Source of the DNA: Zygnema circumcarinatum SAG 698-1b | Taxonomy: Eukaryota > Plantae > Zygnematophyceae | Assembly (NCBI GenBank): GCA_037447605.1 | Contig: CM074819.1 | Location: forward strand, 2,283,580-2,347,579 | Direction of reading: 5' to 3' | Length of the DNA: 64,000 bases | In this document: positions 1-37,500 of the stretch, one piece after another | How positions within the stretch are numbered: the stretch's first letter is position 1 | Layout of the letters: every line of letters begins with the position of its first letter | Position numbers and translations under genes: made by a program | The notes under the pieces: generated by a model | Seen by the model: the letters and a program-made list of their open reading frames with translations, nothing else | Told to the model about the DNA's origin: nothing | Database searches by the model: none

Positions 1-1724
1 ACTTTGGGGGATGATTATGGAAGTGCAGATGATGTGTGGATCAATGTGAGGAGGATACAACAGCAACAGGAGTGAAATTCACAATCAGAATCGCAATACT
101 GTAGCATGTGAATTGATATCCCACCTCTTCCCACGATTCAAAGTGGGGCTGAGCAGCCTGATTGTTGGCACTGATGATTTCGACAGCGTCAGTGAACTCC
201 ATCCCCTTCACAAAGGTCAGGTACCTGGAAAAAATAGAAGCACACGTTAGCCGAGATAAGGAAGAGAGAAGAGAGATGGAAAGGGGCAGAGAGCGAGAGA
301 GGGAGAGAGAGAGAGCGAGAGAGAAGGGGGGGGGGGGCTCACCCTAGAGCCACCAATGGACTGCGGTCCACCCCCGAGGTGCAGCACACGTGCACTTTAT
401 AGCCTAATGCCACGAGCGATGCGACAGCTCTCACAGCCTCCGGCAAAGCAGCAGCCTGTACAAAAAAAATCGCACTTTACACGTAAGGAAATGTTATCCA
501 TAAAGCTACCAGCAGCAGCAGTTCAATCAGTCTGCCATGATCTATGTGCCAATCTGGCCCAACCGCACCTGGTCCTGGTAGTCCCCGTCCCTCATGGAGA
601 TTCTGACGGCCATCAAACCCTTCTGGCTGGCCCTTTCCCGGAACTTTCCCCAGTCGAGGCCGAGTTTGTCACAGCCGTCTTCCGTCTGCAGACCATCAAA
701 AGCAATTGATCAGTTTTCACTAACAGGAGTTGTTAAAAAACGGCCTCCAATGATATTCTTAACTATGTTGCAAGTACGCAGAAGTAGTCAGCGGACGACT
801 GACCTCAAGGAAAAGGAGTGCGGTGGTCTTGGTGTTGGCGAGAAGGACATCGAGATCGCGAGGAGAGCGCGGGCACGGCCCCATGGACAGCTCCTCAGAG
901 AGCACGCTCCATGCAGGGGGCACCGCCTGCGAAGTACCTGAACACTCCAAATGCACTCCAATTCAGAGCCTTCCCCCCGTTTCGCATATCCTTTCTAATA
1001 TCTAACCACCAAAACTCCTCTTTCTCACTTTCAGCCCCCTCCCTTTCCCTACTGTTCCAGCCTTCACCATCTCCTCTCCCTCCCTCTCGAATTCCCATTT
1101 CGTTAGCTTATCTTTCCGACACTGGCCCCCCAATCAATTTTTCCATTCCAATCCATCAACTAATTTCCCTCACAGATATTCTTCTCTCTCAGTTTCTCAG
1201 CCATTTCTTCCTTTTTAAGTCCTTCTCCCTACCACTTCCCCAACCTGTTCCATTTCCCATTCCCCTTTCCCTCCTCCCTCATTCTCTGCTCCCTTTCCCT
1301 TTCCTCTCCTCTGCATTGCCCTCCCTTGCTCCTGTGGAAGTCTCCATTGAAATTTCTACAAGTTCCCCTGCCTGTCCCTCTCCCTCCCCTTCCCCTCCCC
1401 CCTCGCACACACTCTCACTCCCCTCCCCCTTCCGAAAGCGGACAGCTGGACCGCACCCGAAGAGCGCCACGTGGCGACCCCCGTGGACGGCGCCGTGGCA
1501 ACAGCATTGGTCCTGATTGGCGCGCCTCTGCGGGCGGGCGCCTTCCCCGCGCTCCCGCGCACAAGCAGCGGTCGCTGCCGCCCGTGGGCGTGTCGCCTGC
1601 CTAGCACGGGCAGGCCCTGGATGCTGCTGCTGCTGCAGGAGGAGGAGGAGGAGGGCACACCCTTCGCCGCAGCTGTGCTTTTCTCCAGAAGCGCTACCGA
1701 CGAGCTTAGGTTTACTGCCGCCAT
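1..1724 (-). CDS. Plastid-targeted dual-specificity phosphatase of the glucan-phosphatase (SEX4/LSF/laforin) family; 3' end lies outside the window
   Basis: Phase-consistent exons 1724-1457, 937-804, 685-569, 455-343, 224-125. They give a Ser/Ala/Arg-rich transit-like N-terminus, then WSVLSEELSMGPCPRSPRDLDVLL...GLDWGKFRERASQKGLMAVRISMRDGDYQDQAAALPEAV...VHVCCTSGVDRSPLVALGYLTFVKGM. This aligns by eye with the SEX4/LSF DSP domain (D-loop RDxD, CX5R loop). Confidence 0.85.
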
Positions 1725-1971
1725 GCTCTCTATCTTGATGAGCCGAGAAAAGCAGTACAGAGAGAGAGGGGAGGGAGGAAGAGAGAGGGGAGGGAGGGAG
1801 AGGGAGGGGAGGGAGGGGAGGGAGGGAGAGGGAGGGGAGGGAGGGAGGGAGGGAGGGAAAGAGGGAGGAAGGAGGGGGGCGAGGGGCCCGTGCGGCAGTG
1901 GCAGAGCGAGGAGGGCGCTAAGAGGGCCGGACGCAGCGCAGCCGCACGCAGGGCGGGGCCCTGCACGGGCT

Positions 1972-2176
1972 CCACGTGGCGCGGGTGGATAAGGGGCACG
2001 CGGCGGACCGCGTTCCGGCGACGCCCGCGACCGCCGGAACGGAACAGAGCATGGAACCGTCCCCCGCGACTACACGCACATAGCATGGAGTGGGTCCCGA
2101 CCGTTGCGCGCACGTGCGGGAGCCACGTGGCGCGCCGCCCGCCCCACGTCATGGCCCGGACGGGCCAGGACCGTAC
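1972..2176. promoter_or_regulatory. Promoter of the DSP gene with G-box cluster and one CCGTAC site
   Basis: CCACGTGG 1972-1979, CACGTG 2111-2116, GCCACGTGGC 2122-2131, CCACGTCA 2144-2151 and CCGTAC 2171-2176, in a GC-rich island upstream of the ATG at 1724. Confidence 0.55.
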
Positions 2177-4178
2177 TGCGCGCGCAACGGCGCCGGTCGT
2201 GCAGCTCCGTGCGGCGCTGCTCCGTCAGGGACGGGCCTGCGGAACGAACGGGCAGGATCTGTGGCTGGCTCTACGGGCCGTTGGACAGAGAAAGACCAGG
2301 TGAGAAAATAAAAATAAATGGACTGCCGTGGATTCCAAAAATTTGCAAATCATACAAATAGTCCGGTCGCAAATCTCAGCCGTCCGATGGCGTACCGCGA
2401 GCATTGACCAGATGCCGTCGATTCCCCGGCGGAAGGGGGGGAGCAGAGGGATGGATGCGTTCCCAGCCGTCGATCTGCAGCGGGCCGTCGAACAGTCGTC
2501 GGCCGGGCGCGTCGGGACGGCGGAACGGAACGGCCTCCTGCGGGGGCGCCAGCCGTCCGTCCGATGACAGCGCGCGAGCGAGCGCGTCGTCCCGCGCCGT
2601 CGATGACCGCTCGAGGGAGAAAGGGAGGGAGCGGACGGACGGACGGACGGACGCATCGCAGCCGTCCGCTTGCGGCCTCCCTGACGGCTCGCGCCTTGGC
2701 GGGCAGCAACTTCTTCCAGCTCATGACCGCCCGCCGGCCGACACCCGGCCAGGCCATGGCGGAGTCGTCACGAGGACAGCGCAGAGCGGCGTGGCAGGCG
2801 GTCAGCTTCGTCCTTCTTTGATTATTACCGGACGTACGTAATCATGTTTTAACCCTGGTGTTGCGCCGTCGTTACTGGCTGTACCCAGCAGCTGAGATAG
2901 GAAAAACATGGCGTTGCAGAGAATGGTGTGGCATTGGCGTTGCAGCGTACAATAGCTTGTGAACCAAGATGTTAAGAAGTGCTTATGTATTTCCCGCAAG
3001 TCGCAACAGTTATTCACCGACAGGTGCAGGGACATTGAGTATAGGGGACGTGAGGGGGAGCAGGGTGGGAGAGAAAATGGGGAAGAGAGTGAGGGAGAAA
3101 GGAAGAGAATGGGAAAGGAATGAGGAGAGTTTCGCGTTCCCGGTATTAGGCAGACACTCCAAGTTATTGAGTTAACTAGTTACGGAAGAATACACGATTG
3201 AGTAAGATTTTCCCCTATTAGAATTTGAAAAAGGATGTCAGCCATTAGTCGCCTTTGAGGGACTTCAGGTTTTTTGTTCCAACTCGTTAGTCAATCTTCC
3301 CAAAACTGAAGTCTATACTCTCTGCCCCCCCAATTCAGTATCCTCGTTCCGCACCTGTGGTTAACCGTTACAAATGCAAGATAGAGGTTTACCTTCACAT
3401 TTAAATTAATAAGAACTGCGCAGTCTCGACAAAGGAGGTTCTCCAGAGTTGGTGCAACAAACAGACATAATTAACCCACACCGCCTTAAACATGACTTCC
3501 AGATGTCTTTGCAAATTACTTTCACGCTTTTTCGCCTCGGCATCACGTGAGGAAGCCAGTGCCAAATTCACTAACTGCAACAATCTAAGAACGAGCGTTC
3601 CAGCCTCAATCGCCAAAAGCTCGTTAGGACCAGAAGGCCTCCGGTTGGTTAAAAATGTGCTCATTCAAAAGATTGAAACAAAGATTTTCAACTCCGACAA
3701 CATGGCTATCTCAAACACCATCACTCTATCAATGAACTATATCAAAGATGATTCAGTAATCGATGACCTGGCTGCTACTCCGTCACATGCGCTACTCTTT
3801 TAGAATCGCGTATCAGAAAATTAAATTGCGATTAAGCTTTCTCAAAAGACAGTACAAAGTGTTAAGAACTTATGTACTAATTAACTCTCCTAGCATGCAC
3901 TCGGCGTGCTCTGGCCTATCTCACTGACCCCGCACGCCCTATTCTACATGTACTTACAGCCCACATAGGAAAAGTCCGCAATGTGAGAAACTGGCTATGC
4001 AAGTGTTCGAGTCAGACCATTCCGAGCAGTAGCCCCTCGTGTGTGCCGTACAATGAATGCTGGGCCTGCTTGTCCCCACTCCGTGCCTTCCCTCTAGACA
4101 ATGTAACCATTAAACTGCAACCTCTGCGCTTTTGCACTTCAAATCTCACCTTTTTAAAGTCCCAACCCATCACATATT

Positions 4179-4507
4179 TTAGGTTTTGCTCCACCGTGGG
4201 GCTTCAGTCACAATGGCGGTGCCGTTTTGCGATGAGATAAAGGGAACAGCAGTTTTCGAGGCTCCATTGCTCGACTCAGCGGCTATCTCCTCCACCACCA
4301 CCACCTCCTCCCCCTCGTTGGGGACCACGCGGGCCTTAATGCCCTCATGCACGTTCAGCAGCTCCTGCAGCCGCACACGTCACAACCGCATAAGACAACA
4401 TCATTCATACCCAGCTACATAAAGGAACGGGCAACTCCTGAGAAAGAAGTTTATCCAGAACACAAGTTCCTACTATACCGCCTCCCTCCCCCCTCTCTCT
4501 CTCTCTC

Positions 4508-4567
<60 letters not shown>

Positions 4568-4711
4568 CCACTCTCTCCAAATCTCTCTCTCCAAATCTCC
4601 CTCTCCGATATCTCTCTCTCCAATATCTCTCTCTCCAATATCTCTCTCTCCAATATCTCTCTCTCCAATATCTCTCTCTCCAATATCTCTCTCTCCAATA
4701 TCTATCTCTCC

Positions 4712-4760
<49 letters not shown>

Positions 4761-7070
4761 GTCTCTGTCTCTCTCACCTGTGCGTTGGTACGAGCGGAGG
4801 TCGAAATGACGCTGAGAGCGAGGATGGAGAAGGGCTCCTCGATGAGCACTCCGACTTCCTCGACGCAGAAGAGCACCGCCGTGATGATGGCGGTTATGGG
4901 CACAGTGAGCCATCCGCAGGAGTCCCACAGGGCGAGCGGCAGGAAGAGGTGCCACAGCACGAGGAACCGGGAGGTCAGCCGCGTGTACGACAGGGGGATG
5001 GGGGTCTTGAAGATGCGCTCACTGCCTCCAATGTCATCGGCAAAAGTTTGCAGATTGTTGTCCTGCACAAGGTAAAAGGCTAAATTCAGCACCACCAAAA
5101 GAAAAAGACTCAGGTACTCAATTTATTATAATCAATATAAAGCGTTAACGTTAGGGGCATTCAAGGAGAGGCACTGCGCGCACCATGGACAGCTTCTGCA
5201 CGGAGTCGAAGGTGCAACGGCCGATGAGCTCGGAGCACATCTGAAGGATGTAATTAGGGCGGTGGGTGGTCGAAACGCACGCCTTGATCTCCTCCTCCGT
5301 GAGAGAGGTCAGCGTCTGCGGGCCCGCATTTCAAACTGCTTAGCTTCCCAAACAGAGGCTCCGATCCACCACAGCAGACAGAGAGCTGTTTTAGAAATTT
5401 AACCGGCGGCAGATACATTTCCAGTTTTCATAATCCCAGAAGAGCGCTGACCTTCAAATCGTACTCCAAGTCGCCCTCCTGCACCATGTGGTGCTTGTAG
5501 GTGATGGAGAAGGCCTGCAGGTGGCGGATGAACTGCAGCATCTTGGGGCGCTCGTTCTCATACTCCCCGCGCGCCATGTAAGTTAGAGCTTGGCGGGTGA
5601 TATCACGCGTTCTGTTCAACATCAGTCCCCACATTTTGCGGGCCTGCAAACACATTCACCATTTGGAAAAAAAGTCAGGCAATTAGCATAATATTACAAA
5701 CAAGAGAAATCGCAAATTTCAAGCAGGAAACAGTGTCTCGAGATACACAAGGGTGCAGTAATCACCTCATCGAAACGTCCGTAGCTCGCGTTAGTCCGGA
5801 AGACTAGGAGGAAAGAGAGGGCCGGCGAGGTGAGGGAGAAGGGCAGTGCGTTGACGTGCAGGAGTGGGAGCACCACCGGCAGGCTCGCCTGCATTATGAG
5901 AGTGTTGATGGAGCACACGGAGAGGGCGATGCCGGTCATGGCCACCACCGGGGGGACAAGGGACCCGATCACGCGCGAGCTCACAATGGACTGGATGTGA
6001 CGGACATAGCGACCGCTGCTCTTGTGCTTCTGCAGAAACAAAAAAGGAGAGACCTCACTGTGAAATCGGAAGAAAGAAAATAAAATTCGGCTCAGATGTA
6101 CTTTTTCAACTGCATGATAGTGGACTGAATCAACAATTGCAGTCAAGACAACCTCCTATGGCGAATTTTGTTTCCACGGTCAATTCAAAAAAATTCAAAC
6201 GCTTCACTTGTGCTGTACTGATGCAATTGCACTGTACAAACACTCTACATTGCACTGGCGAAGGACGAAGAATTGCATCGAATTGGCATATACAAAGCAT
6301 CGACCGAAACAAACGGTTCCAGCGAAAAAAAAAAAAACAATCTGTCGACGACATTGGAGCGTTCGCCACGAAAAGCAAAGGCGATCTTGATAATCTTACA
6401 GAACCAGAAGAAAACAGACAATAAAGGCGACGACATTGCAGGCCTTGGACCCATAGACAACCCTCATTCAAAGACTTTGAAAGACCCCGCACACCCAAGT
6501 GAGCGCAAAATTCACCCCCCTTCAAGATCGCCAATCAAAACGTAAATTTACCCTAAAATTCAAGAAGGGATCCACACGCACCTTCCAATCGTCGAAGGTG
6601 AAGACGCTGCGGCGGTACGGCATGCCCTCGAACTTGGCGCGGTCGACCTCCGCAATGTCGAGCAGAGCGGTGGTCAGCGGCGACTTCCCCCCCTCTGCGC
6701 GCACACGCGCGCGCCGACCCCCTGCGCCGGTGAGGGGCCGCCGGGACAGCTGGTGGCTCTTCCCCAGGCTCTGCCACATGCCTGACTCCGACCATCCATG
6801 GCTACCGGCGTGCGAGCAGAGGCCGGAGCAGCCGCATGCCTTCTTCAGACAGGCACCGCACTTGCAAGAGGCGGCGTGGCGGACAGAGGGCTTGCACACT
6901 GCGCATTTGCAGGACGCGCCATGGCGGGCAACAGTCCCCACTGCGGAGAGCTGCGCCGCGAGGCTGCCCGCGCATCCGCGACAGCGGCATGACGAGGAGT
7001 GAGAAGACACTTTCCCCGAAACATACAGCTTCATGGAGGTCGCCCCCATCGGACTCAGTGCGGTAGCCAT
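4179..7070 (-). CDS. BST: Thylakoid-type bestrophin anion channel (UPF0187; BST/VCCN family), 6 exons
   Basis: Exons 7070-6582, 6029-5766, 5643-5452, 5315-5184, 5062-4778, 4364-4179, all phase 0 with GT-AG. Family motifs: RRSVFTFDDWKKHKSSGRY, LSFLLVFRTNASYGRFDEARKMWGLMLNRTRDITRQ, HRPNY, PIPLSYTRLTSRFL, EEVGVLIEEPF. Confidence 0.95.
4490..4775. repeat. Compound intronic microsatellite: (CT)n plus about 7 copies of a 15-bp unit CAATATCTCTCTCTC
   Basis: Directly visible in bestrophin intron 5 (4365-4777). Confidence 0.9.
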
Positions 7071-7344
7071 GCCTGCCTCTGCTCCTCGCTCTCCCTCTCT
7101 TCCTTCTCTGTCTTTCCCTTAAAACTCCCTCTTTTTGCCTCTCTCCCTCCCTCTCTCTCTCTCCCGCTCTCACTCGCTACCTGCACACGAATTGCCGTGC
7201 ACAATTGGCGGTGTGGCGCTGATATCTGGCGGAGGGGGGGAAGAGCAGGCTGGGCGGGGGCTGCCCGGGGCCAAGTCCCGAGGCAGGCGCGGCGGCGGCC
7301 CGCCTCGCCTCTGATCGCGACCGCGTGCGCTCCGCCCAGGGCCA

Positions 7345-7841
7345 GCCACGTGGCACCGGTCACGCCCTTACGGTACGGCCGTGCGCGGACTGGCGGACGC
7401 CTCGCGCGTGCGGTAGTACGGACGGCGGCGGCGGAGTGCGCTGGAGTGGGCGGGCGGGCGGGCGGGAGCGTATGACCGCGGCTCCATGGAGCCCTGTTGA
7501 GCGTGGACCAGGTCGGAATCTGGCCAATCGCAGCCAATTTTGACACGAATGTGCCACGTGGCGACCTCGGAGTGGGCGGTGGGCGCCGGGGGCGATCGGA
7601 TCCGCGGCAGTCGGGCGGGGCTTTGGCTCCGAAGGCGAGGCGCGGGGCGGTTCGGGGCCCCGGCCCGGGTCTAGGTCCGGGTCCAGGTCCGGGTCTGGCT
7701 CTGGGCTGGGTTCCGGGCACAGGGGGGTGCTGGCGGGCGGCAGGGCGGCACGGAGTGTCGGCGGGCGGGCGGACGTGCCACGTGGCGGGCAGCGGAGGGA
7801 GGCGGAGGGTCGGCGGCCCCTCGGACTCGGCGCCACGTGGC
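7345..7841. promoter_or_regulatory. Bestrophin promoter: four perfect GCCACGTGGC G-boxes, two GTACGG sites, tandem CCAAT boxes
   Basis: GCCACGTGGC at 7345, 7553, 7777, 7832; GTACGG at 7373 and 7416; CCAAT at about 7524 and 7534. Confidence 0.6.
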
Positions 7842-8803
7842 CGGTCGCGGGCGGCAAGGCAGGTCGGCGGAGATTCGGTGCTCGCCGTGTAGGTGGTTGG
7901 GTGGCACGGGCAGGGTGGTTCGCACGTGCGAGCCACGGCAGTGCGGGTGGAGAGGTTGGCTGCAGGGAGGACTGACTGACTGACTGACTCGCTTCGATGA
8001 AGGACATATGATTTGTTGAGCATCCGCCACGACACGACGCGAGGCAGCTTTGTAACAGAACCACATCTCGCTTGACGGCCAGTTTTTAGGAGACATCGAC
8101 ATCGATGCTGGCTGGCTGGCTGGCTGGCAGTGAGTGATCACTCCCGGCCATCCTGTCCATAACCATTAGACGCATTCTCCACGAACGAACTTGTAAAGCA
8201 TCTCCTGTCCTCCCTCAGTCAGTGCGGAGGAGCTTAGGTCAGGCAGGCAGGCAGGCAGTGGGCACTGATCGCTTTGGCGAGTGAGGGGAGAGAGTGATGC
8301 ATGTGTGAGGAGGGAAACGAGCAGAACTCTTCGCACGTGCCACAAGCGCAATGATAGGAAACAGCTTAAAAAAGGCATGATGCCATCTATTTAGCTCAGA
8401 GCTAGGCTGTTGCTGCTAACAAGGAATCAGGTATCTGCAATCGATCAGCAGTCAGCTGCAGGTTTGGGCCGTATAGCAATTTCCACTACCACGCGTTCCC
8501 GTTCATTCTCTTTACTGTCAGATTTCCGTCCCATTGGGTACTTCGAATTCTGTAAGAAAAGCAGTCTAGAAAGTCGAGGGCTGGCAGATGAGCAGAAAGG
8601 AGATAGATGAACGCTCACTTAGATTAAATATTTGACTGATTTACATTGAACTGGTAACTCCACAACTACTGGCGCCTAACGGGACCCTCCAATTTTGGAG
8701 GGCTGCACGCTGACCTACCCTGCGACTGCTGCCTGACTAGTAATACACAACATGCACAGCCCCCTCCGTCTGCCACGTGTCTCCCCTATCACACTGCCTC
8801 CGC

Positions 8804-11470
8804 CTAAGCAAGGAGTCCTGCGCTGAGAGACTTGATGGTGGTGATCTGGTTCACTTCGCAATGGAGGAGATGGCGCTCTCCGCGGATCACGGCATACCTG
8901 CCACGTCATTTGCGATTGTGCTTGTCAGGCTCAAAATATTCATATAAATTATTTGACTTCTCATTTTTGCGTGAAGAATAGTTTTTCCGGAGAAACTGAG
9001 CACAGAGTTTGACGCCATTCTACACGATTGCACGTTAGAAAAGCATTGCTTGAGCACGGGGAGGTTCCATGCTCACATAGTTCCGGGGGCGACGTAGTCC
9101 ACAGTTCTGTCCAGCCGGAATGGCTCGCCCGGGATCTGGTCCACAGAACCACGAGGACCGACCGCCTCCCATTAGAAAGGAGAAGAGACTCGACTCGTCT
9201 GGGCACTACGATTGAGCTCAATTTACATGTTTACTAGGCGTGGTTCCATGTCTCTCCCCGCCAGAAAAGGCAGAGCCTCCAGGAGAGAGAATAACTATAT
9301 ATCGACAGTGGCAGAAATTTCTACATACAAAAGTGGAGTAACGAGTTAAGACATCCCCAAAGCCTCACCTGGTTGCCAGAGTGGATCTGCACTCCGGTGA
9401 CGACGGCGTAGTCAGATGTCTCGGGGTTGACGGTCTTAGAGATGAGCAGCTCCAAGTCGTCAGTGATCACCTGCGGCAGCATCCTTCACGAATTAGGTGT
9501 CTGCTTCCACCCTACCTCTTCGCTGCAAGCATTCATGGGAATCGGCATTGCAGGTAGATGGACATATGCCTTCAATAACAAAAGTGTCAATGTAAGAACT
9601 TTTAACAACTCACCTGCAGAGCGGCCTTTGTAACGTCGACAAGGCTTGGGCCAGAGGCGGTTTGGCAAGAAGGCTGCAGAAGTAAAGCAAATCCCACAGA
9701 CAAAGTCAACACAAACCAAAAAAAATTATATATATGTATATATATATGTATATACGATTCATTAAACGAGTGGGGAAGCGCTAACAATCCGCAAGTTCCC
9801 TGAGGACGCCTCTCGTACCTGGCTGAGAACCTTCCTCTTGAGCGTGATGTACTCCGCGTCCTCCTCGTCCTCCTCGATCTGCCCCGCCCCGAGCTTGGCG
9901 TCGTTCTTGATGGCGATCAGCGCCCCGCACGCGCTCGAGGGCTTCCCGCGGCCCCGCCGGAGGAGGGACCCGACCTCGCCGCTCTCGCCGATGGACACGT
10001 GCGGGAACGCGAAGAATACATCTGCGGGGAAACGCGCGGAGAGGGGCAGAGAGTTAGGGGCAGAGAGTGAGAGGCAGAGGGAGAGGGGCAGGGACAGGCC
10101 GGCGAAAGGTCAGTCAAAGTGCAGGCGCAGGAACGGGGCGAGGGAGGGGGGCGGGGCGGCACTGACAGCGTTCGCGCGGCTTGCCGTCCTTGTCGCAGGG
10201 GAACTCGGGGCTGTGGGACATGCCGGCCTTGAACCCCGTCTTGCCGCAGTTGATGAGCCCGCCCAGCCCGGACACGTTGAAGGACAGCCCGAACGTCTGG
10301 TCGATGTACGTGGCCAGGGGCCGGCACACCTGCACGCCAAAAAACACTCACGTTCGCTCAGTGCGGGGATGCAATAGGCCAATGCAATGTGCGTTTCAGA
10401 CTGCTGAACATTTCAGTCAATAAATTTTAAAGTAAAGCAAGGTCAGGGCAGCAGGTATTACCTCATCACGGCAGGTGTTCACAAGAGCGATGCAGTTTTC
10501 CCTGCCGGACATCCCAAACCGACCCTCATGTCAGTAGCGAATACGAAGAGCCACCAACATGCTGGAGAAATTCCTCCTCCCTCCCTCCCTCCCTCCCTCC
10601 CTCCCTCCCTCCCACCTGCTGAAGCCGAGGTTGAAGAGCTCCTCCGCCACGGCGGAGACGAAGCTCTCATCCTGCATGGCGTTGGGGAAGTAGTAGCTGA
10701 TGGTCGCCAGCGCCGCGGGCGCCGCCCTCTTGTTGAACTTCGACACCGCGCCGTTCGTGGACTCGGCCGCGGGCGGGGCCGGGGCCGCCGCTACGGGCAC
10801 CTCCTTCGCGGTGAACTTGGAGACCGCGGCGAAGCCCACCGCGCCGAGGACTGTGCCCACACCCAGCAGGGTCGGCACAGGCGCGGGGGCCACGCTGGAA
10901 CTCGCGGAGATGGACGCCACCTGCAGACCTGCAGCAGGGCGCGGGGCAGGGGGGTGAGGAGGGGAGAGGGAAAGATGGCGGGGGAAGTGGAAGGGAGAGT
11001 ACAGGAAGGTGAGCGGCAGAGAGAGAGAAGGGAAATAGAGAGAAAAGAGTACGGACAGGTAGAGTGGGACAGAGAGAGAGATACGTCGCAGAATGCGGGA
11101 AAGGGAGCCTGGGAAAGGGAAAGGTGAATGGAAGGAGCTTGGATGGGAGAGAGGATGAAACGGCTGAAATGTACAGAATATACAGAATGTATGGAGGTTA
11201 TGACAAGGGATGGAGCGAGTACGTGCTGGGGACCGAGCTGAAAAAGGATGGCTAGGGAGCAGGTTGGACGCTGAGGGAGAGCAGCTTACTCTGTGCCGCG
11301 GACATTTGAACGCTCTCCTCTCCTCCAAGAGCAGCGCTCACTTTAGACGCAGTCCATTTCCTAGCGGGCGCTGCAACCACAGCGGTGGCTGCGCTCTTAG
11401 GGGCAGCGCGCAGGCCGGCCCAGGAGGACACCTCCAGCTTCAGGCATGGGCTTCCCAGTGCGGCAGCCAT
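8804..11470 (-). CDS. LCIB: LCIB-family (limiting-CO2-inducible, beta-carbonic-anhydrase fold) protein, copy 1, 9 exons
   Basis: Exons 11470-11290, 10928-10616, 10501-10462, 10329-10167, 10021-9819, 9673-9614, 9470-9369, 9135-9077, 8897-8804, phase-consistent. LCIB motifs: NCIALVNTCRDE, FGLSFNVSGLGGLINCGKTGFKAGMSHSP, RERYVFFAFPH, SACGAL, ITDDLELLI, DYAVVTGVQIH. The Cys/His/Cys zinc ligands are intact. Confidence 0.95.
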
Positions 11471-14972: not shown

Positions 14973-17331
14973 TCACGCAGACACGAGCTGGGCGCTGACT
15001 GACTTAATGGCGCTGATCTGGTTAACTTCGCAGTGCAAGATGGACTTCTCCCCGCGGATCACAGCATACCTGCAATGCATGCAATGCGCGACCATTGCAA
15101 TCAGTCAGTAGCTAACAAGCAATCTTGCAGAGGCGCAACATTAACTCTTCGTCTGTGTAGGCACTCAGGATTTCTAAATTCACTCACATTGTTCCGGGAG
15201 CGACGTAGTCGACTGTCCTGTCCAAGCGGAAAGGCTCACCGGGAACCTGCACGCAGAAAGAAAACGACGTGAGGGGAAGTTGGACAATGTCGCAAAACAC
15301 ACAGGAAAGAAGACGCGGAAAGAGAGAAAGAAAGGTAAAACAATGAAAGGAGGGGAAGTTTGACCTGAGCGCCGGAGTGAATCTGCACACCAGTGATGAC
15401 AGCGTAGTCTGAGGTCTCAGGGTTCACAGTCTTGGAGATGAGGAGCTCCAAGTCGTCGGTGATAACCTGCAGGGAGAAAAAAAGAGGTTAATGGCTGGAG
15501 AAGAAAAACCACACTGCAGCAAAAGTTTCCCCTATCGAGAACAACTGCTTTTGAAGTCAGAGTCTCACCTGCAGGGAAGCCTTGGTGACGTCCACCAGGG
15601 ACGGGCCAAGAGGACCGGCGTCTCTGCAAACGGGCTGCATAAAGAAGGGAATGCAGGGTTAGAAATGGAAAGCAGACACTGGGAAATGTAACCAGCTGAA
15701 ATCATAGTTGAGTTAAATTTTCGAGCTCAATTACCTGGCTGAGAACCTTCCTCTTGAGCGTAATGTACTCCGCATCCTCGTCGTCATCAGCAATCTCTCC
15801 ATCGCTGGCACTGTTCTTGATGGCGATGAGCGCTCCGCACGCGCTGGAGGGCTTACCGCGGCCACGGCGAAGGAGAGAGCCGACCTCGCCGCTCTCACCG
15901 ATGGACACGTGCGGGAACGCAAAGAACACATCTGCGGGCAAACGCGCGGAGAGGCAGAAGAAGAGAGGCAGAGAGAGGCGGGCAAGAACAGGCCGGCGAA
16001 AGGTTAGTCAACGTGCAGGCGCAGGGAAGGGGCAGGAACGGGGCGAGGGAGGGGGGCGGGGCGGCACTGACAGCGTTCGCGCGGCTTGCCGTCCTTGTCG
16101 CAGGGGAACTCGGGGCTGTGGGACATGCCGGCCTTGAACCCCGTCTTGCCGCAGTTGATGAGCCCGCCCAGCCCGGACACGTTGAAGGACAGCCCGAACG
16201 TCTGGTCGATGTACGTGGCCAGGGGCCGGCACACCTGCACGCCAAAAAACACTCACGTTCGCTCAGTGCGGGGATGCAATAGGCCAATGCAATGTGCGTT
16301 TCAGACTGCTGAACATTTCAGTCAATAAATTTTAAAGTAAAGCAAGGTCAGGGCAGCAGGTATTACCTCATCACGGCAGGTGTTCACAAGAGCGATGCAG
16401 TTATCTCTGCATAACATCCCAATCCGACCCGCTGTCAGTAGCAAATACGATGCACCACCGACATGCATAAGAAATATTTTCTACCTCTGCCTTCGCCTCT
16501 ACCTCCTCCCTCCCGTCCTCCTTGCCTCCCACCTGCTGAAGCCGAGGTTGAAGAGCTCCTCTGCCACGGCGGAGACGAAGCTCTCATCCTGCATGGCGTT
16601 GGGGAAGTAGTAGCTGATGGTCGCCAGCGCCGCGGGCGCCGCCCTCTTGTTGAACTTCGACACCGCGCCGTTGACAACCACGGGAGCCGGAGCCTCCTCC
16701 TTGGTGGTCATCTTCTTGAAGACGGCGTAGCTGGTGGCTCCCAGGAGGCCACCCAGGGCGAGCACAGCGGGGACGGGGGGCTGCGCAGCAGCAGTGCTCG
16801 CGGAGACGGAGGCCGTCTGCAGGCCGGCGAAGGAGACCTCATTGCCTGCCAAGATTGCAAAATACCAATTAATGAAAAAGATTTTCAAGAATCCGCATGT
16901 TCCTTAAGTCTTGTCCCTTTCCTGCATATCATTTGACGGACTACGACAGCTACCTGCACTGAAAATCTTAACTTAAAGGGATTTACGAGTTAGTCTCTAC
17001 CACAATGCCTCTTACTCTAGACCTCCTTCCGGTTCATCACATTGCTATCAACATCGTCCTTGCTAAGGCCATCGTTCTTTGACCATCATTTCTTCCCATA
17101 ACACTTAAACCATTTATCTCCCATTAATACTCTCGTTCTTACAACTTCCCCTCCCACAACAACCGCAAAGCCCTTACTCGCAGCGGAGCTCTCCCCAGCC
17201 TGAGCGAGCACGACGCGAGACACCTTCGCCACTCGCGCAGTCTGTGCCTTGACAGCGACCTCCTTCCCTGCAGAGCGCAGGCCTGACCACTGGAGGGCCT
17301 CCATTCTCAAGCTGGCGCTGGCGGTGGCCAT
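14973..17331 (-). CDS. LCIB: LCIB-family protein, copy 2 (tandem paralog), 9 exons
   Basis: Same intron positions as copy 1 (exon 1 17331-17178, exon 2 16845-16533, exon 3 16406-16367, exon 5 15931-15735, last exon ends at TGA 14973). Motifs NTCRDE, FAFPH, SACGAL, DYAVITGVQIH and YAVIRGE are present. Confidence 0.95.
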
Positions 17332-21352: not shown

Positions 21353-24300
21353 CTACTTTTTGCTGTAGTCCCGCCCATAGGGGAGCGGAGGCCATCGCCC
21401 CCGCCCCTGTTGCGACACCCACGCTGCTGCTGCTGCTGCTTGAGTCGAGCGGGAGGAGGACGGGTGTGCGCGGGGCTCCCACTGCTGTGCGGCCACCTGG
21501 GAGGGCGGCTCCAGGTGGGACCGCGTTAGCAGCGCCGCTTCGGCAGAAGGGCGCCACGAGGGGGCCACTGCTGCGCCATCCATTCTAGAGAAGATGCGAT
21601 TGGAGGGGTCAAGATAGTGCGATTCCGGAGGTCTGTTGGCGGAAGTGAGAGCATCGGGCACATGGTGCCACGGCGCACCGAGGACGTGGGTGGCGGGCAG
21701 CTGCGTGAGGCAGCTCGGCGCCATCGTCCGAGGCAGCGGCCCCAAAGAGGCAGATGCAGAGAGGGGAGGAGCAGGCGCCCTCCCAGCAGCCGAAGCGAGT
21801 GCAAGCATCTGCTGAGAGACCCCATGACTAGGACCGGCGGACCCATTCACAGCGGCAGCATTGGGCGGGGGCAGAGGCCCCCCCGATGACACAACGCCAG
21901 TTTCAAAATTGAACTCAGGGAGATCGTCAGTGTCCGGAATTGATCCGCCGCCGCCGCCAGCGGCAGTCCCCCGTGCTGCCACTACATACGCCTGCCTCCC
22001 TGTCCCTGACCTCTCGCTCACGCCTCCGTAAAACCCTCCCTGTTCCTCATGACCCGTCTGGTAATGCGATGGAGGTGCCGAACGTCTCTTGCCTGCCTCC
22101 ACGGGGCTGCCCTCATCCGCCCCTCCCATTCGCCGACGTGGGTCCCGCGCAGCGACTCTCCCTTGAGCATGGCTGCCGGAATGGTCAGAGAGACCACCTC
22201 TACCCTGCGACTTGCGACCCTCGAACCCCGGCGGAAGAGAGAAATTGGGTTTGCTACTGGAGGGTTTTGTCGGACGCGGACTGGACGTCTTCACAGGGGT
22301 CTGGACAGTCTTTTCCTTGTCTGCGCTGGAGGGACCTTGAGCTTCTGTTTCTGAGCGCTGCAGAAACCACGAGGGCATGCGGGATCGCCTGCGAATGAAA
22401 GCCCCAACAAGGAGCTCTCCCCCGGTGGCAGTCCCCTCCCCCAATGGCAACAGGTAGCCATAGCGTCGAAGGAGGTCCACACAATCATCCACCCACGGCA
22501 GAAAATAGAGTTCCCCACCCCCCTCTAACTCTGCAAAACCAACCCGTTCACTTTCACGATACTGTTCCGCTGCCTGCACGTCCACAACCTTGAGTAGGTG
22601 ATCAGTAACAAAATAATAAAGAAACTGCGTTCCCAACAAATACAGATTTTCCCAACATTGCAAAAAAAGTTTGTGCTAAGCAGGGAAATGGCCTCCTCGA
22701 CACTGTTCTAGCTCGCTCTGCTTCTTTCAAACAGGACATCAGTGAGGAAACTCGAACTGATGGAGCGCAATGTGGTCGTCCACAGATCTATTTCAGCCTT
22801 ACCTCTTGCAACAGTTGTTGATTAATCTGCTCCTCAGATTTCCCACTCGCGAGAATTCCAACGACCTGCACAACGCGACAATAGCTGGTTTCAAAAAGGA
22901 GTCCTGAACGAGTTGGAGGGGAAAAACGAAACAAAGTGGGGAAAAAGAAGGAGGGAATCATTGAGTCCCACCATCACAGCCCGAGCCCGGGAGCTCTGTA
23001 AACTCGCAAGGAAACCCTCCATTTCTGCATATTTTACACGGCCCTTCACTTCCACCAGATCTTCCAAGCAGTCCTTCACTGGAAGGCGCTCTCCACTGCA
23101 AAATCACACGAACCCATTGAATCAGATCCTGTAAACCCATCTTTTTTCGTACAATTCTTTCAATCATCACCCACAAATCACCACAACCCAAGAGCTGTCA
23201 GGAGCCCAGCTGCTAAAAGTTGAATCTAATTTGAATTACTGCTTACAAGCACTCCACACAAATACTAAGCATACAAAGCATGTTACCCTAACATTGACAC
23301 TATCTCGAACAGAGACGCGCGCCTCACCTGCGGTATTCTAACCGAACTCTGCAGAGTCCTGCACTGCCAAACTGCAGCCGTCCCTGCCAAACCTCCCTGT
23401 TCTCCTTTTTCGCTAGCCATTCTTCCTTGTCTATCGAAGCAGCAATCGTTTTTCGATTCCGGGGAGTAGTAGGACTGGGTAGGTCGAGTTCAGGGGCTGC
23501 AGAAGGGCTGCTGGGAGGAGTCGCTTCCTGATCTTGCAAAAAATCCTCCTGGACAACTACTGGACTCTTTCGGCTTCCTGTTCGAGCTTCCATATACTCA
23601 TCTAGAGACATGATTGCGGGCAATTTTGCCTCACGTTTGCCTTCTTCCCTAAGCTTTGACTCCTCCTTCACTGCTTGGCCCTCTTCAAAACTGTTATGTT
23701 TGCTTGGAACCTCAGAAAGAGAAGTTGCAGATTCTTCCATTCGCTCCAATGGGACCACCGCTTGTGTCTTTCCCTCGATTCCTGTTTGCTTTGATGGCTC
23801 GGAAGAAATGGGCAATCGGGACGAGCTCAAACCGCCAGCTATAGCTGCGTCGATTGGAACATCCATAGTTTCCTCTCGCTGGAGAAGCACAACCTCTCCC
23901 TTATGCGTTTTCTTTACTACCCGCCACATTGCATCCTCTGATGGTAGCACCACCTGCAGGGCATGCTCCTCAGCTTTGGCGGTACGCCACTCCGCAAGCT
24001 CCCGCGATGCCAGCTGCTCAGCTGTCATAAGGCACAGGGCCTGAGGAGCAATTTCACCACTCATAACGCGCTGCCGCAGCTCAGGGTTCGCCCTATCTTT
24101 GAGATTAAAAAGCAGAGACCGAGCTCTTTCCCGATACTTTTTGCTAGCACCCCCAAATACCGTATACATTTCGTTTTCAATTTCAGCAGCCAATGCAGCA
24201 GCCTTCTTCTTCAGCTCAAACAATTCAGTTAGCTCTTCGATCGTGCGGGCTTGTTCAAGTTTAAGTGGTCCGGCAGTAGCTGCGGAAGGCATAGCAGCGG

Positions 24301-27300
24301 CTGCTTCCACCTCTGCTTTTACCAAAACCGCACCGGATTCAGGACCAGAAAGTTCTCCAGCTGCAGTTAAAGTGTCTGCAGCCTGCTCTCCTAATGCCAC
24401 TACTGACCCCCCCCCTTCTGCAATAAGCATATCCAAACCTTCTCCCTGCTCTATCTCAACACTAGATACAGCTGCGCTCTGCTGCTCAATAGATTCACTT
24501 TGTTCGATGTTTTCTGAAAACTGAACTATAGCATTTGAGGAAATTTCTTGACAAGTGTTCCCAATGGCCTCAACAGAGTCAGACGCCTTAACAGACGTAA
24601 CACCCGTATTATCTGAGACTGTCTCTGTCACCAGAGCAAGGGCAGCCGCAAGTGAATCTCGCAATTTCTGCCTCATAACTACCTGCGAGTTCTCTACTAC
24701 TCGATTCCCTGCACCGGCCAAATTACCGCTGGGGAAAACACCAACTGTCCGCGGTGCTGGCTTAATGACCTCACGAAGTCGACGCTTATTTGCTGCAGAA
24801 TTAACTGTTGTTTCTCTCATCCGTTTCTTAGCCAGTGTCTCCTTCTCTGCTGCTTTCTCGCACTCATTTGAACAGTACCACTGCCTGTCCGTTACCAGTT
24901 TTTCACAACCTAGATAAGCACAGGCTTTCTGTTTGCTACCCCCCGGTGAGCTTCCCAGCTGTTTTGGTGAATCTAAGTCTGCTTTACTGCTCGTCCAGCT
25001 GGTCCCTTGAATATGCATGCCACTCCTTGGACTCACCATGCCCTGAGGTCGAGGACTTGCGAGCCTCTCAGAAGACAAAGGCTCAGTACGAAACGACCGG
25101 CTTCCCATGCTGGAGGCACTTTCTGTCCTCTGCAACGATGCTGCACGTGGAAGAGATTCTTCAGCTTGCCGCTTCACACTTAAATGTGCTCGGATAGCAG
25201 CTGGCACCTCGTCAATCCCCTGAAAGCACACGCGGAACGCGTCAGAATGGACTTCTTATGTTAATCTCAGCAGTACGTCTCTGACTCCAATGTTTAAAGT
25301 AGTACATCAGTACTAAAACTCTATCAAGAAACTGGAAGAAAACTACAAATGCAAATGAGGTTGCTATCAGATACGTAACGACGACCTGAAAACCAACATT
25401 CAACAGTTACAGCCAGGATGTGCGCGGTCAGACATGCTCACCATTGTGACGCTTGCGACAGCTGGTACTACTGTTGAATCTGTCACATAATTGGAGTCAT
25501 GCGTGATATTTGAAGCGGCCATTATGAGAGCCACTTTCTCGACTGTCGCTTCACCCGCCTTTTCAACACTTACTGGATCAACATCTGTCATTGAGGTGAG
25601 TTCCTGCATTGCAAAGGGCCCCAATGGGTTAGAAGTCGAACAGAACAGAGAGCACTTCCAATCTTGTCGAGAGAAGCAACAACTACTTGACACTGCAAAG
25701 GAAGTGTTTCCTTTCTATTGATGGATAAAAAACGACAAATTCCAAACCAATTGACTTTTCTCATTGATCGACACAGATGCATGAGATATACTTGCACGAT
25801 ACCGATGAGCATTGATGCCGAACGTGAAGTGGCATATATCAGGGTATTTGAAAAAAGATCTGACCTTTGTGGCTACATCGAACTCTTTCACGGAAACATC
25901 ACCACCTCCTCCTTCTGACATTTCATTCATATCCACAGGCTCCTCTTCCTGTGCAATATCTGCTGGCGCAAGTGCACTCTGTGCCCCACATCCCAAAAAC
26001 GCCAAATTAGGGCTCGCCGTAGTCGTCATTAAGCAATCTGTGGCAGCAAATCTGACTAGTTCAAGTACTACGTGCAAACAGATTTATGCAGAGCTTGAAA
26101 CAGTGAGAAAGTAATGGCGGGAAGAAGAAAGAGGATGACGAGTGGGTGGGGGCAGGATGTGGGGAGGCGGATGGAGGGAAAGGGGAGATGAGAGTAGGGA
26201 AAGGGAAAGATCAGAAGGAAGAGACTATTCACAGGGAAAAGTCGAAAGAAGAGCATATCGAGTGAACAGTGAGGGAGAGGAGGGAAGGTGTATGCAGACA
26301 AAGCAGGTAAAAGGGAGAGCGGGAGAGGGGATGGGCAGTAGGCGGAAGGAAGGAGGAGAGCGGGGTGGTACGCAAAGACGAAACGGAGAGGGAATGAAAT
26401 ACGAAAGAAAGAGGCGAGAGGAACACACGATTAGGAATTGGAAACAAGGAGAGAGAGAGAGAGAAAAGAGAAAGAATATCTGGGTTGCGAATGCACATTC
26501 TAAAACGAAAAAATGAGCAAACATTGGAGATACCTCTGCCCCGCACGGTAATGCCAGAATCACTTCAGACTCATGTTCTGCAATGCCGTTCGCATGCGGC
26601 TGTACGGCATCATCCTCTCCTCCGCTGCTTAAGCTGCCGGACGGGCTGCCGCTGTGCTGAGGAAAAGCGACTTCATTGCCGGTGATTACAGCTTCAACAA
26701 CTTCAGTTCCGTCCTCCGCTGCACTCTCCTTGTCCATCTGTACGAGATGCCCACGAATTCAATAATCCTAAATAACAGACCATTAACAGCCAAGCACCCA
26801 AGCTCGCTCGTATCTCGTGTGCATGCACATCACCATGACTCCCATCATCACAAACCATCATCGCCACTATATCGTACCTTGTTGTCTCCCTTTCCCGTCC
26901 GCTTCCTTTTGGTACTGCTAGCATTGACATCACATGCAGGGCATATGTAATCCTGAATTCTTCGAGCTTCCTGCACCGCGCATAAGGGAGACAGGATTCA
27001 GCGCTTTGCAAAAGAAACCAGCTAAGACGGGAATTGGAACTTGAACTTAAACTGAAACTAAAAGTGAAATGGAGTGGCCAGTAGGAGATGGGTGACCTGC
27101 GGCGATATGCCAACGCAGGCACCATGGCACCACTCCAGACAATCCGGACTCTTCATGTTTGCATCGCAGGCAATCATGAACTCGCCCTCCTCGTATGGCT
27201 GACGGCAGAGGCAATAAACCTTCTGCGCCTTCTTCTGCGGCAACTCTACTACGTCATCTCGCAGTTTTGCAGGCAGCCGAATTTCTCGCGCCGGCCTGCC

Positions 27301-34529: not shown

Positions 34530-37500
34530 GTGAGCTGGAAGCAGGGGCGCATGCTCACTCAGCTAGTCGATGATTCTGCTCTAGTGGAGGGGTACACCGA
34601 AAGGGAGCAAATTGTTGTGGAACCGAGTCAGCAGACAACTTCTTCAGCCTATTCGGTGAATTCAGGAAAACAGAACGTATTTGAAGGTGGAATTTTCCCG
34701 AGGAAGGAGTATGACGATTCAATCGGTAGCGACAAAGGACCAATCTCAACTTCAAATAGTGCTAAAACTCGCTACTCACCTTCGTCCCTTGCTGGGACAG
34801 ATAAAGTTTCAGTTCCACACAACTGCAGGCCCAGCTCGCCATTGGGCATTCAAAAGTCTGAACGATCCACAGGCACTGCGGTCAGCCATGGCAGAGGCGG
34901 GTCCAACGAATGGAAAGGAATGCAGACAGATAAGGCCACGGCTAGGGAGTACACCCTTGATACGGAGCAGGTTGACAGGAGCACTGTGATAATCGATGAC
35001 GATATTGCAGAGGAGAATATCAATACAAGTTTAAGGGCGGAGATCCTGGCAGGGGTGACATCTGCTCAATTAAGTTCTCGTAAAACTCCACCGCTGAGCG
35101 AGTCGGCAGAAGCTTCAAAGCTGTTGAGACAAGTGCTTGACATATTGGGGTCTGGAGATGGCTCTGAGGTCACTGAATTGATGACAAATTGGGTTAGGAG
35201 TTTCGCAATACGGAGGAGAAATGCAGCGATGTCAGTGGGAGGTCGAAGTGAGGAATCTGTTTTCAAGAGAACAGAGAGAGTTAAGCAAGTCGATGCTCTT
35301 AGGAAGCTAGCCACCTACGTGCCGTACAAGGCGACAGCAAAGATTGTTAATTGTGTGATGCGGGAGCTTGGCGCGGCGGGACATGAAAATGTGGCATTCA
35401 CAATCTTTAAATGGATGCAGGTAAGCGTGTTAGGCCCATTACTCAAAGTAGGGTTGTTTAAAAAGCGGAGAGAAAAGGAAGAAGCTGTACCTTCCGGGAG
35501 CGTTGCGAGTGAAAAACGGAAGGTTTCAGATTGGGAAAGTAGCTATGGGTCCATCCGGTCTGATGCTACATGCAGCTGCACGCCATTGTCTCAAGATCGT
35601 GCTTACTTAGAGGTCACGTTTGTATGGCTGGAGGCGACATTTTGTAGGCTATTCTCGAAGCTGTCATTGCATAATTGCCTGTTGTTGAGCTGGTATGGCC
35701 GAATTCCGCAGCGTGCAAGGGGGGTTGGCCATTTCAATTTTGATGTGTGTGAATTTTAAAATCGGTGAGGACCTCTTCCTATGTCAGTGTTGCTGGAAGA
35801 GTTATTCACATCTGGAAACCGGGGCATTTTTACAGAGACAAGAGTGGTGTGCGCTGGACCCCCACTTGCACACCACAGTGATGGCGCTATTGGCGGAGGC
35901 TGGCGCCCCTAAACTCGCATCGTTCGTTTTTCGGGAAATGGTCGAAGGAGGGTGCAAGGCTGACATCATCACCTATAATGTGCTTCTTCATTCGCTTTTT
36001 TTGAGTGGATTTTCGGAGGCCGCCATGACTTTGTTCAAAGCAATGAAGCAAGGAGAGGGATCAGTCCTTCTCCCTTATGAAGCGGGGCAGGGGGCGGGGG
36101 CAAAACTATTATTTGAATCTCACATAGGTGAGCATAAAGGAAGAACGCCACAGGCAGAGGGAGGAGTCCGGGAAACCACAGTTGAGCCACAGAAAGTAGA
36201 ACAGAATATGGCCTTCAGCAGCAAGACGGATGATTTGCATGGTGGAACGTGGGTGTTTTCCAGCGACAACATCTGTCAACCTAATACGGGAACGTTCAAC
36301 GTTATCATGAATGCCCATGTGAGGGGAGCACACGGGATCTCAACCTGCCTGTCTCTCTTGGAAGAACTGACGACTCTTGGTCTGGAAATGGACACTATCA
36401 CACTGAACATTCTCATACATGGATACGCTTTGAGCGGTCGAGCACACGATGCTCAAAGCCTCTTTTCCACCCTTTCCGAGAAGAGATTGAAGCCGACTGT
36501 GGTAACATATAGTGCGCTTATCGCTGCATATTGCCGAGCAGGTACGGGGGCCCCGAACGCTGCCATTCGTCCTCGCTCGTCAGCTGCATTGTGTTGCTTT
36601 GCGTTGCGTTGCATTTTTAGTTACCTTGTCTGTCTGTGTTCCTCAAGACTATAGCAAAAATCAGTCTGAGAGTACTTTTTCTGCAGAAAAGTATGCTGAA
36701 CGAGGGGGGGATATATCTCGAAACCTGCAGGAGATCTGGAGTCTGCAATGGATATCCTACAGGAAATGTGCAATGAAGGCTGTCCTCCGAGCAGCATGAC
36801 CTACAGCAGTATCCTGGCAGCTGTTGGGAAGGAGGGAGACACTGTTGAAGCAGAAAGACTTTTGCAGGAGATGCGGAGGGCAGGCATCAAGCCGCACATT
36901 ATAACGTTCAATGCGGCTTTACGGGCTTATGCGGAAGCTGGCGATGTGGAGGGAGCAGAGGGACTTTTGCATCGCTTAAGCCGCGAGGGCTTGAAGCCTA
37001 CCGTGGCTACCTTCACTACTCTGATGGTAGCATATGTAAATGCGGGGCTCTACTCTCAGGTGCGAAAAGTGAAGATGCTTACATTCTGGGAGGGCCCAAA
37101 GGGTAAATGCATCTTCAAACTGTGAAAGGAAGCTGCCCCCTTTCTTGCATGTACACTCGTCCTGGCGCAAGCGGATGGCACAAGAACAAGGCATAGAAGC
37201 TGTCAACTTCGAATGCGACAATGCATAGTGTAGCTCATGGAGTTGTAACTGAATCCCCTGTTTGTGAAGCTGCACAACCTGTCGATGCATGCCTAAAGGC
37301 CCGTCTGTCTGCATGCACTAATCGGCCTACCTTGTGCACACAACCTTGCAGGTGTGGCCCATCCTGGAGGAGATGACCGCCGGCGGGTGTCCCCCCAACG
37401 GTTGGACCTTGACGACGGCCATCCGCGCGTGCGCGGCCGCGCGGCAGCCCCTCCGCGTGGCGGCCCTGCTCGACCGCGCGCGGACCCTAGGGGGCGGGGG

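Follow-up and report, generated by a model that had tools for sequence, protein, structure and literature searches.

The window analysed here is a 64,000-nucleotide stretch of the genome of the zygnematophyte alga Zygnema circumcarinatum SAG 698-1b (assembly GCA_037447605.1, contig CM074819.1, positions 2,283,580 to 2,347,579 of the forward strand), and all coordinates below are counted from its first nucleotide. We identified two LCIB genes in tandem on the same (minus) strand, about 5.9 kb apart, with a bestrophin-like gene beside them. In both LCIB genes, the region between a transit-peptide-like first exon and the catalytic domain encodes a conserved hydrophobic segment that is a candidate transmembrane anchor.

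The model of LCIB copy 1 was built from splice-site reading and tblastn with transcript-derived homologues, and comprises nine exons that end in a stop at 8804 and give a predicted product of 384 residues. Exon 1 (11342-11470, minus strand; 43 codons), identified by reading the sequence, is transit-peptide-like, includes S-W-A-G-L-R, and closes in phase 0 with A-S-K followed by gtgagc. Exon 2 spans 10920-10616 and is followed by exons 3-6 (10462-10501, 10167-10329, 9819-10021 and 9614-9673) and exons 7-9 (9369-9470, 9077-9135 and 8804-8897, stop included), all on the minus strand. The catalytic domain (8804-10755) occupies the remainder of exon 2 to 10616 together with exons 3-9. Copy 2 is similarly organized on the minus strand, and every homologous exon piece was found, read piece by piece: a transit-peptide-like exon 1 at 17224-17331 (36 codons; Q-W-S-G-L-R), exon 2 at 16816-16533, and a catalytic domain (14976-16672) that begins within exon 2, fills it as far as 16533 and continues through the exons after it, with the gene ending at about 14976.

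Searches with the window LCIBs were run exon by exon, or with database homologues in place of the spliced proteins. Single exons matched PF18599 (LCIB_C_CA; cut-off 25 bits) with scores of 45.7, 49.7 and 25.5 bits in copy 1 and 46.8 bits in copy 2, and the motifs T-C-R-D-E, S-H-S-P, F-P-H-V and S-A-C-G-A-L were all found in the window exons. The C-R-D-E, H and C columns, which correspond to the zinc-ligand Cys/His/Cys and catalytic Asp-Arg residues, are invariant in a 42-sequence family alignment. The exons are 73-92% identical to unnamed EukProt and Logan sequences, the nearest named taxa being Netrium, Coleochaete and Mesotaenium; identity to the hornwort Nothoceros is just 43-70% (for exon 5, 43% versus 73-78% for the best algal matches). 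By sequence, both genes encode a chloroplast-targeted LCIB, a theta/beta-type carbonic anhydrase of predicted activity, and by their catalytic domains both are ordinary members of the LCIB family.

The order of elements in the N-terminal region can be read directly from the sequence, and runs from transit peptide to tail, hydrophobic segment, basic flank, linker and catalytic domain. Exon 1 of both copies is net basic and rich in Ser, Thr and Ala, and its W-x-G-L-R aligns with the Q-W-E-G-L-K of transcript-derived homologue N-termini. In copy 1, exon 2 begins with an uncharged Ser/Ala/Pro tail of 16 residues (10873-10920, minus strand; V-A-S-I-S-A-S-S-S-V-A-P-A-P-V-P) that carries the conserved A-S-[IV]-S and ends in P-V-P. 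It is followed by the 17-residue hydrophobic core TLLGVGTVLGAVGFAAV (10822-10872; predicted residues 60-76), in which small residues are spaced in a small-xxx-small pattern, and then by a basic juxtamembrane stretch, S-K-F-T-A-K-E, and an Ala/Pro linker of 15 residues (together 10756-10821). The corresponding parts of copy 2, also on the minus strand, are a tail at the start of exon 2 (16769-16816; T-A-S-V-S-A-S-T-A-A-A-Q-P-P-V-P, with the same P-V-P end), the 17-residue core AVLALGGLLGATSYAVF (16718-16768; predicted residues 53-69), and the basic stretch K-K-M-T-T-K-E-E with an Ala/Pro linker of 7 residues (16673-16717). The motif K-[FM]-T-x-K-E is common to both window copies and the homologue P0068.

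A first-pass annotation of this DNA had reported the hydrophobic segment in both paralogues, and it is indeed present in exon 2 at 10872-10822 and 16768-16718. These coordinates cover the 17-residue core and do not span the 23 residues quoted with them, and the uncharged run, given as 17-19 residues, actually begins with the exon and covers 33-34 residues up to the first Lys. The G-x-x-L-G-A motif, the following Lys and the Ala/Pro linker that it described are all found in both copies. Exon 2 of each copy also encodes the first 47 residues of the catalytic domain, from 10755 and 16672 on. Since a single exon contains both the segment and the domain start, the segment certainly lies within the LCIB polypeptide; in transcript-derived homologues, too, the segment and the LCIB domain occur in one open reading frame (ORF). 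The N-terminal extension before the domain is about 90-97 residues long.

A short conserved motif precedes the Ser/Pro tail, reading F-A-S-V-S-Q in most homologues and x-A-S-[IV]-S in the window (10909-10920 and 16805-16816), and a V-R-A-type motif sits farther upstream of F-A-S-V-S-Q in the family alignment. Intron 1 of the window LCIBs falls exactly before x-A-S-[IV]-S. By analogy with Tic40, these two motifs may mark one- or two-step processing sites.

Kyte-Doolittle maxima over 19 residues are 1.89 in copy 1 and 1.69 in copy 2, where the classical threshold is 1.6. The Eisenberg mean hydrophobicity is 0.71 and 0.67, and the hydrophobic moment is 0.13 and 0.09, respectively; with so low a moment the segment is not amphipathic. 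Taken by itself, hydropathy makes a moderate case. Hydrophobic clustering within a single sequence is weak evidence here (shuffle p = 0.14 for copy 1 and 0.10 for copy 2), because the N-termini are Ala-rich. We therefore dropped per-sequence shuffling as a main argument, and the case against chance rests on conservation.

A HMMER search with exon 2 against 1.84 billion representatives returned just 17 matches, the full-length ones of which carry the segment. About 100 LCIB-family proteins were gathered by two word searches and each was anchored on the hidden Markov model of the domain; the protein collections searched contained none from the genome of the window itself. In this set, 35 streptophyte-type LCIBs hold the segment at the equivalent aligned position, including those of Closterium spp., Mesotaenium, Netrium digitus, Coleochaete scutata, Klebsormidium nitens and K. 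subtile, as well as that of the hornwort Nothoceros aenigmaticus (P0092). Alignment of streptophyte and hornwort N-termini, which the first-pass annotation had proposed, extends the feature that it had described in the two paralogues to streptophytes as a whole, from Klebsormidium and Coleochaete through Zygnematophyceae to a hornwort. The aligned consensus is approximately [LIV]-[LIV]-P-x-[IVL]-[LV]-G-A-G-x-[LV]-G-x-A-x-[FY]-A, then Lys. Across the 35 proteins, Kyte-Doolittle maxima range from 1.5 to 2.4, Eisenberg values from 0.58 to 0.84 and hydrophobic moments from 0.01 to 0.17, and the segment lies 23-36 residues upstream of the domain in most (extremes 18-66). Four chlorophyte LCIBs (Volvox, Monoraphidium and two unnamed) are without a comparable segment, with Kyte-Doolittle maxima of 0.7-1.5, and the crystallised Chlamydomonas LCIB aligns with P0068 solely from beyond it.

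On a maximum-likelihood tree of the domain alone, presence of the segment requires 2 changes, compared with a mean of 5.6 after shuffling, and none of 500 shuffles was as low. One change falls on the long, fully supported branch that divides streptophyte-type from chlorophyte-type LCIBs. The remaining change is a loss within a clade that includes a second Coleochaete paralogue: P0077 (Coleochaete scutata) and P0008 (Logan) form a streptophyte-type sub-clade without the hydrophobic segment. These sequences suggest a single origin of the anchor in the lineage of streptophyte LCIBs, with later loss in a few paralogues. Coleochaete scutata also retains an anchored-type paralogue, P0082, so that a species can have soluble and anchored forms side by side.

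Two LCIB-domain proteins of the lycophyte Diphasiastrum complanatum (NCBI; P0131 and P0132, 269 and 256 residues) begin at the LCIB domain itself, with neither a transit peptide nor a hydrophobic segment, and group with the hornwort sequence on the tree, both branches being long. P0099 (Logan, 524 aa), which is unplaced in the LCIB family, has an N-terminal region of far higher hydrophobicity (hydropathy 2.25), perhaps with two segments, whose spacing to the domain is different. Judging from its sequence, it may be an independently membrane-bound LCIB.

The history of the two window genes also bears on the segment. Their DNA is 90% identical by blastn between 10755-9816 and 16672-15732, introns included, and no similarity was detectable by blastn between the paralogues upstream of 10755 and 16672; the boundary is sharp and falls exactly at the first codon of the catalytic domain in each. 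By Nei-Gojobori counts, the number of synonymous substitutions per site (dS) between the paralogues is 0.03 in the domain part of exon 2 (47 codons) and 1.2-1.5, near saturation, in the tail and hydrophobic segment, where the nonsynonymous value (dN) is 0.43-0.54. The contrast indicates that the duplication is old and that gene conversion later homogenised the catalytic part. Both diverged N-termini nevertheless keep the prolines, G-x-x-L-G-A, the uncharged run and the basic flank, so the hydrophobic pattern has outlasted a long divergence, in agreement with the first-pass remark that the segment is kept although its surroundings have diverged. Such retention suggests that selection has acted on the segment's physical character.

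The layout before the segment resembles that of a known class of inner-envelope proteins. In Tic40 the reinsertion signal is a Ser/Pro-rich region before the transmembrane domain, and conserved prolines precede TM1 in Tic40 and Tic110 and not in stop-transfer proteins (PMC2667645). Among the 35 homologues, tails before the segment average 65% Ser/Pro/Thr/Ala, and in 33 of them one or more Pro residues fall between -12 and +4 of the hydrophobic stretch. The window tails, which end in A-P-A-P-V-P (copy 1) and A-Q-P-P-V-P (copy 2), likewise have the Ser/Pro-plus-proline character of Tic40. The membrane location of hornwort LCIB that the first-pass annotation had mentioned is borne out by the literature: in Anthoceros agrestis, LCIB::mVenus overlaps TIC40::mScarlet at the chloroplast envelope and is called membrane-bound in one 2024 preprint, and in a second it forms a thin ring beneath the envelope (Robison et al./Lafferty et al.). 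Neither Anthoceros preprint mentions a transmembrane or hydrophobic LCIB segment or another sequence basis for this localisation, and in the literature available to us no paper was found to describe a transmembrane helix or domain in LCIB. The Nothoceros protein, used as the seed of a further word search, brought up no other hornwort LCIB.

We propose that mature LCIB keeps a single-pass membrane anchor at its N-terminus, a reading that we consider probable on balance. The inner envelope is the most likely site, because the Ser/Pro-rich-plus-transmembrane-domain layout fits the Tic40 signal and hornwort LCIB co-localises with TIC40. The encoded precursor consists of a transit peptide (F/W-x-G-L-K/R), an uncharged Ser/Pro/Ala tail with final prolines, a Gly/Ala-rich hydrophobic segment of about 19 residues and a positive flank, from which a flexible Ala/Pro linker, of 7-15 residues in the window copies and more in many homologues, leads to the catalytic domain. 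After import, the transit peptide would be removed and the hydrophobic segment would insert into a chloroplast membrane, reaching the inner envelope through post-import reinsertion of the Tic40 type. The short tail would then project to the intermembrane (or lumenal) side, and the linker would hold the enzyme at the stromal face. Hydration of CO2 to HCO3- would there take place at a fixed surface, in contrast to the soluble, relocating LCIB of Chlamydomonas. The small-residue face of the segment (G-x-x-x-G, G-x-x-L-G-A) may pack anchors together within the LCIB oligomer. Such an anchor would account for the published and so far unexplained localisation of hornwort LCIB. As for the tethered carbonic anhydrase, of a design unlike that of chlorophytes, suggested in the first-pass annotation, the anchor-like character of the segment and its absence from the four chlorophyte LCIBs stand, whereas its retention in the mature protein and the membrane concerned are what we infer.

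The orientation is suggested by the flanking charges. Lys and Arg are usually absent from the 15 residues before the hydrophobic stretch, and 1-3 of them usually occur in the 12 residues after it (a few homologues have none). The mean net charge across the 35 homologues is -0.74 over the 30 residues upstream and +1.03 over the 15 residues downstream; in 30 of them the more positive flank is the downstream one. Under the positive-inside rule, a rule of thumb, this asymmetry predicts a stromal catalytic domain. The same residues bear on the idea that the segment is the H-domain of a cleavable bipartite presequence, which would release LCIB as a soluble enzyme into the thylakoid lumen, as for a theta-type carbonic anhydrase of Phaeodactylum. 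A stromal transit peptide followed by a hydrophobic stretch is the order found in lumenal proteins, some homologues close the segment with A-x-A, and a lumenal LCIB-family enzyme is said to have been described in a diatom by Kikutani in 2016. However, a twin-arginine occurs in none of the 35 sequences, most have neither Lys nor Arg among the 15 residues that precede the segment, and the basic residues come after it rather than before. A-x-A is found in fewer than half of the homologues, as expected of Ala-rich sequence, and in neither window copy; a linker of 7-50 residues is conserved after the segment, and the hornwort fusion protein is at the envelope and not at thylakoids. We consider a lumenal enzyme very unlikely.

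Several observations weigh against a retained envelope anchor. Wimley-White octanol values are marginal in the window copies (-1.0 and -2.5 kcal/mol; +1 to -7 across the family), as is the plain Hessa sum (+1 to +3 in the window copies). AlphaFold2, run with family alignments on full-length P0068 and the hornwort protein P0092, gave a confident catalytic domain and a low-confidence, unstructured N-terminus throughout, with pLDDT below 50 and no helix over the segment. The alignments were shallow and gappy over the N-terminus and the method models no membrane, and we read this outcome as an absence of support for the anchor rather than a refutation. Cutting by the stromal peptidase at upstream V-x-A-like sites would leave 2-3 basic residues about 20 positions before the segment in the window copies, which weakens the topology argument for these proteins. 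The link from segment to envelope rests on one other hornwort, Nothoceros, and not on the A. agrestis sequence, and our literature search found no LCIB localisation in zygnematophytes or other streptophyte algae, the only paper to mention both LCIB and the Zygnematophyceae being that on the Anthoceros genome.

The marginal Wimley-White and Hessa values, the many glycines and the lack of a predicted helix would also suit a segment that is retained without spanning a membrane, as a Gly/Ala-rich hydrophobic patch serving oligomerisation or peripheral or monotopic membrane association. Some 19-21 uncharged residues, a near-zero hydrophobic moment and asymmetric flanking charges are instead features of spanning segments, and we give a non-spanning patch scarcely any weight. 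The disordered AlphaFold2 models, together with the weakly significant clustering in single sequences and an extension of about 90-97 residues, which is within the range of long transit peptides, are compatible with a segment that is the distal part of such a peptide, or another import or sorting aid, and is removed to leave a soluble stromal enzyme of the Chlamydomonas kind. Transit peptides, however, evolve fast and lack conserved hydrophobic blocks, whereas here the block, the prolines, G-x-x-L-G-A and the basic flank are kept from Klebsormidium to a hornwort. It is the preceding region that is variable, and in homologues that region has, well before the segment, its own V-R-A-type motif resembling a processing site. 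Chlorophyte LCIBs enter the stroma with no such segment, and a soluble protein does not account for the envelope ring in Anthoceros. Removal of the segment is, in our judgment, improbable.

If the segment is indeed kept as an anchor, it could also lie in the thylakoid membrane with the enzyme on the stromal face, possibly near a bestrophin HCO3- channel. Sequence alone would not separate envelope from thylakoid proteins with a single span and N-out/C-in topology, and the literature search left streptophyte algae without an LCIB localisation of either kind. On the strand shared with the LCIB genes, the bestrophin-like gene directly follows copy 1 on its downstream side, as context outside the LCIB protein, in an arrangement compatible with co-regulation. 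Its exon pieces were found at 5431-6155 (minus strand) by matches to PF25539 (Bestrophin_2) of 60.5 bits (5697-6155) and 35.3 bits (5431-5655), with a cut-off of 27, and the gene probably runs between about 4000 and about 7100. Together, this gene and the two LCIB genes make up a cluster, about 13 kb in length, of genes of the type involved in CO2-concentrating mechanisms (CCM). Gene adjacency is uninformative on protein adjacency, and in the sole experimental data on a streptophyte-type LCIB the protein shares the envelope with TIC40 and lies apart from pyrenoids and thylakoids; the Ser/Pro-rich-plus-proline feature, moreover, has been described for inner-envelope reinsertion. A thylakoid location seems unlikely to us. 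The earlier suggestion that the carbonic anhydrase sits next to the bestrophin is unsupported at the level of the proteins, the genes alone being neighbours: a 2024 hornwort preprint puts LCIB at the envelope and reads the localisation of BST1 as HCO3- transport into the thylakoid lumen.

Elsewhere in the window, Pfam scans of neighbouring ORFs gave just PPR, TFIIS_M and a weak V-ATPase E match, and an Rfam search produced no match. Pieces of a P-type PPR gene lie at 35689-37122 (plus strand), and a long ORF at 23327-25255 (minus strand) contains a TFIIS central domain and has a third-position GC content of 0.44, compared with about 0.8 in the LCIB exons. There is an assembly gap (a run of N) near 37740.

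The placement of LCIB is among the few parameters of reaction-diffusion models that decide whether a pyrenoid-based or a 'passive' CCM works, and modelling, as quoted in a 2024 hornwort preprint, finds envelope LCIB to be optimal when thylakoid stacks form a diffusion barrier. The hornwort papers report envelope LCIB without a mechanism, and a short sequence-encoded anchor would supply one that is directly testable by deletion and transplantation. If it is correct, the origin of the fixed-enzyme design moves back to streptophyte algae, and crop engineers would have a compact module for directing a carbonic anhydrase to the inner envelope. Going further, we speculate that Tic40-like tethering by a Ser/Pro-rich region and a transmembrane domain is ancestral in streptophytes, dating to the ancestor of Klebsormidium, Zygnematophyceae and land plants. 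The 'passive' CCM layout of hornworts, with its envelope-fixed carbonic anhydrase, would then be inherited from algae and no hornwort invention, the module of about 40 residues would serve as a transferable tag that attaches any stromal enzyme (Chlamydomonas LCIB in crops, for example) to the inner envelope, and in this alga the anchor would work together with the neighbouring, possibly co-regulated bestrophin gene. Taken whole, this wider proposal is tentative, and we would place the odds somewhat against it.

Among characterized systems, the LCIB of Anthoceros agrestis is one of the closest, being streptophyte-type and located at the envelope, where an N-terminal anchor would place it. It differs in that a single LCIB is reported there and two occur in the window; moreover, the window proteins are nearer to zygnematophyte-type LCIBs than to the hornwort protein of Nothoceros. 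LCIB/LCIC of Chlamydomonas reinhardtii (PDB 5k5w, 5b5x) share the catalytic domain, PF18599, and P0068 matches 5k5w with E = 1.6e-54. Chlamydomonas-type LCIB, in contrast, is soluble and has no hydrophobic N-terminal segment, and the window copies depart from that type, with maxima of 1.89 and 1.69 against the chlorophyte range given above. The Chlamydomonas protein moves between the stroma and the pyrenoid periphery, as quoted in a 2024 hornwort preprint.

Tic40, and with it Tic110, offers a similar layout: a transit peptide, a Ser/Pro-rich region with prolines, a single N-terminal transmembrane domain and a large stromal C-terminal domain. The likeness goes no further than layout, and Tic40 has no sequence homology with LCIB. 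Pt43233 of Phaeodactylum, reportedly a lumenal LCIB homologue of the theta type, would likewise be an LCIB-family enzyme that an N-terminal extension fixes at a sub-chloroplast site; it differs in being lumenal, whereas the window LCIBs are without the features of a lumen signal (a basic N-region and a consistent A-x-A). Set beside these systems, the window LCIBs are predicted to be part of a streptophyte-wide variant of the family that is characterized by a conserved, Tic40-like N-terminal anchor module.

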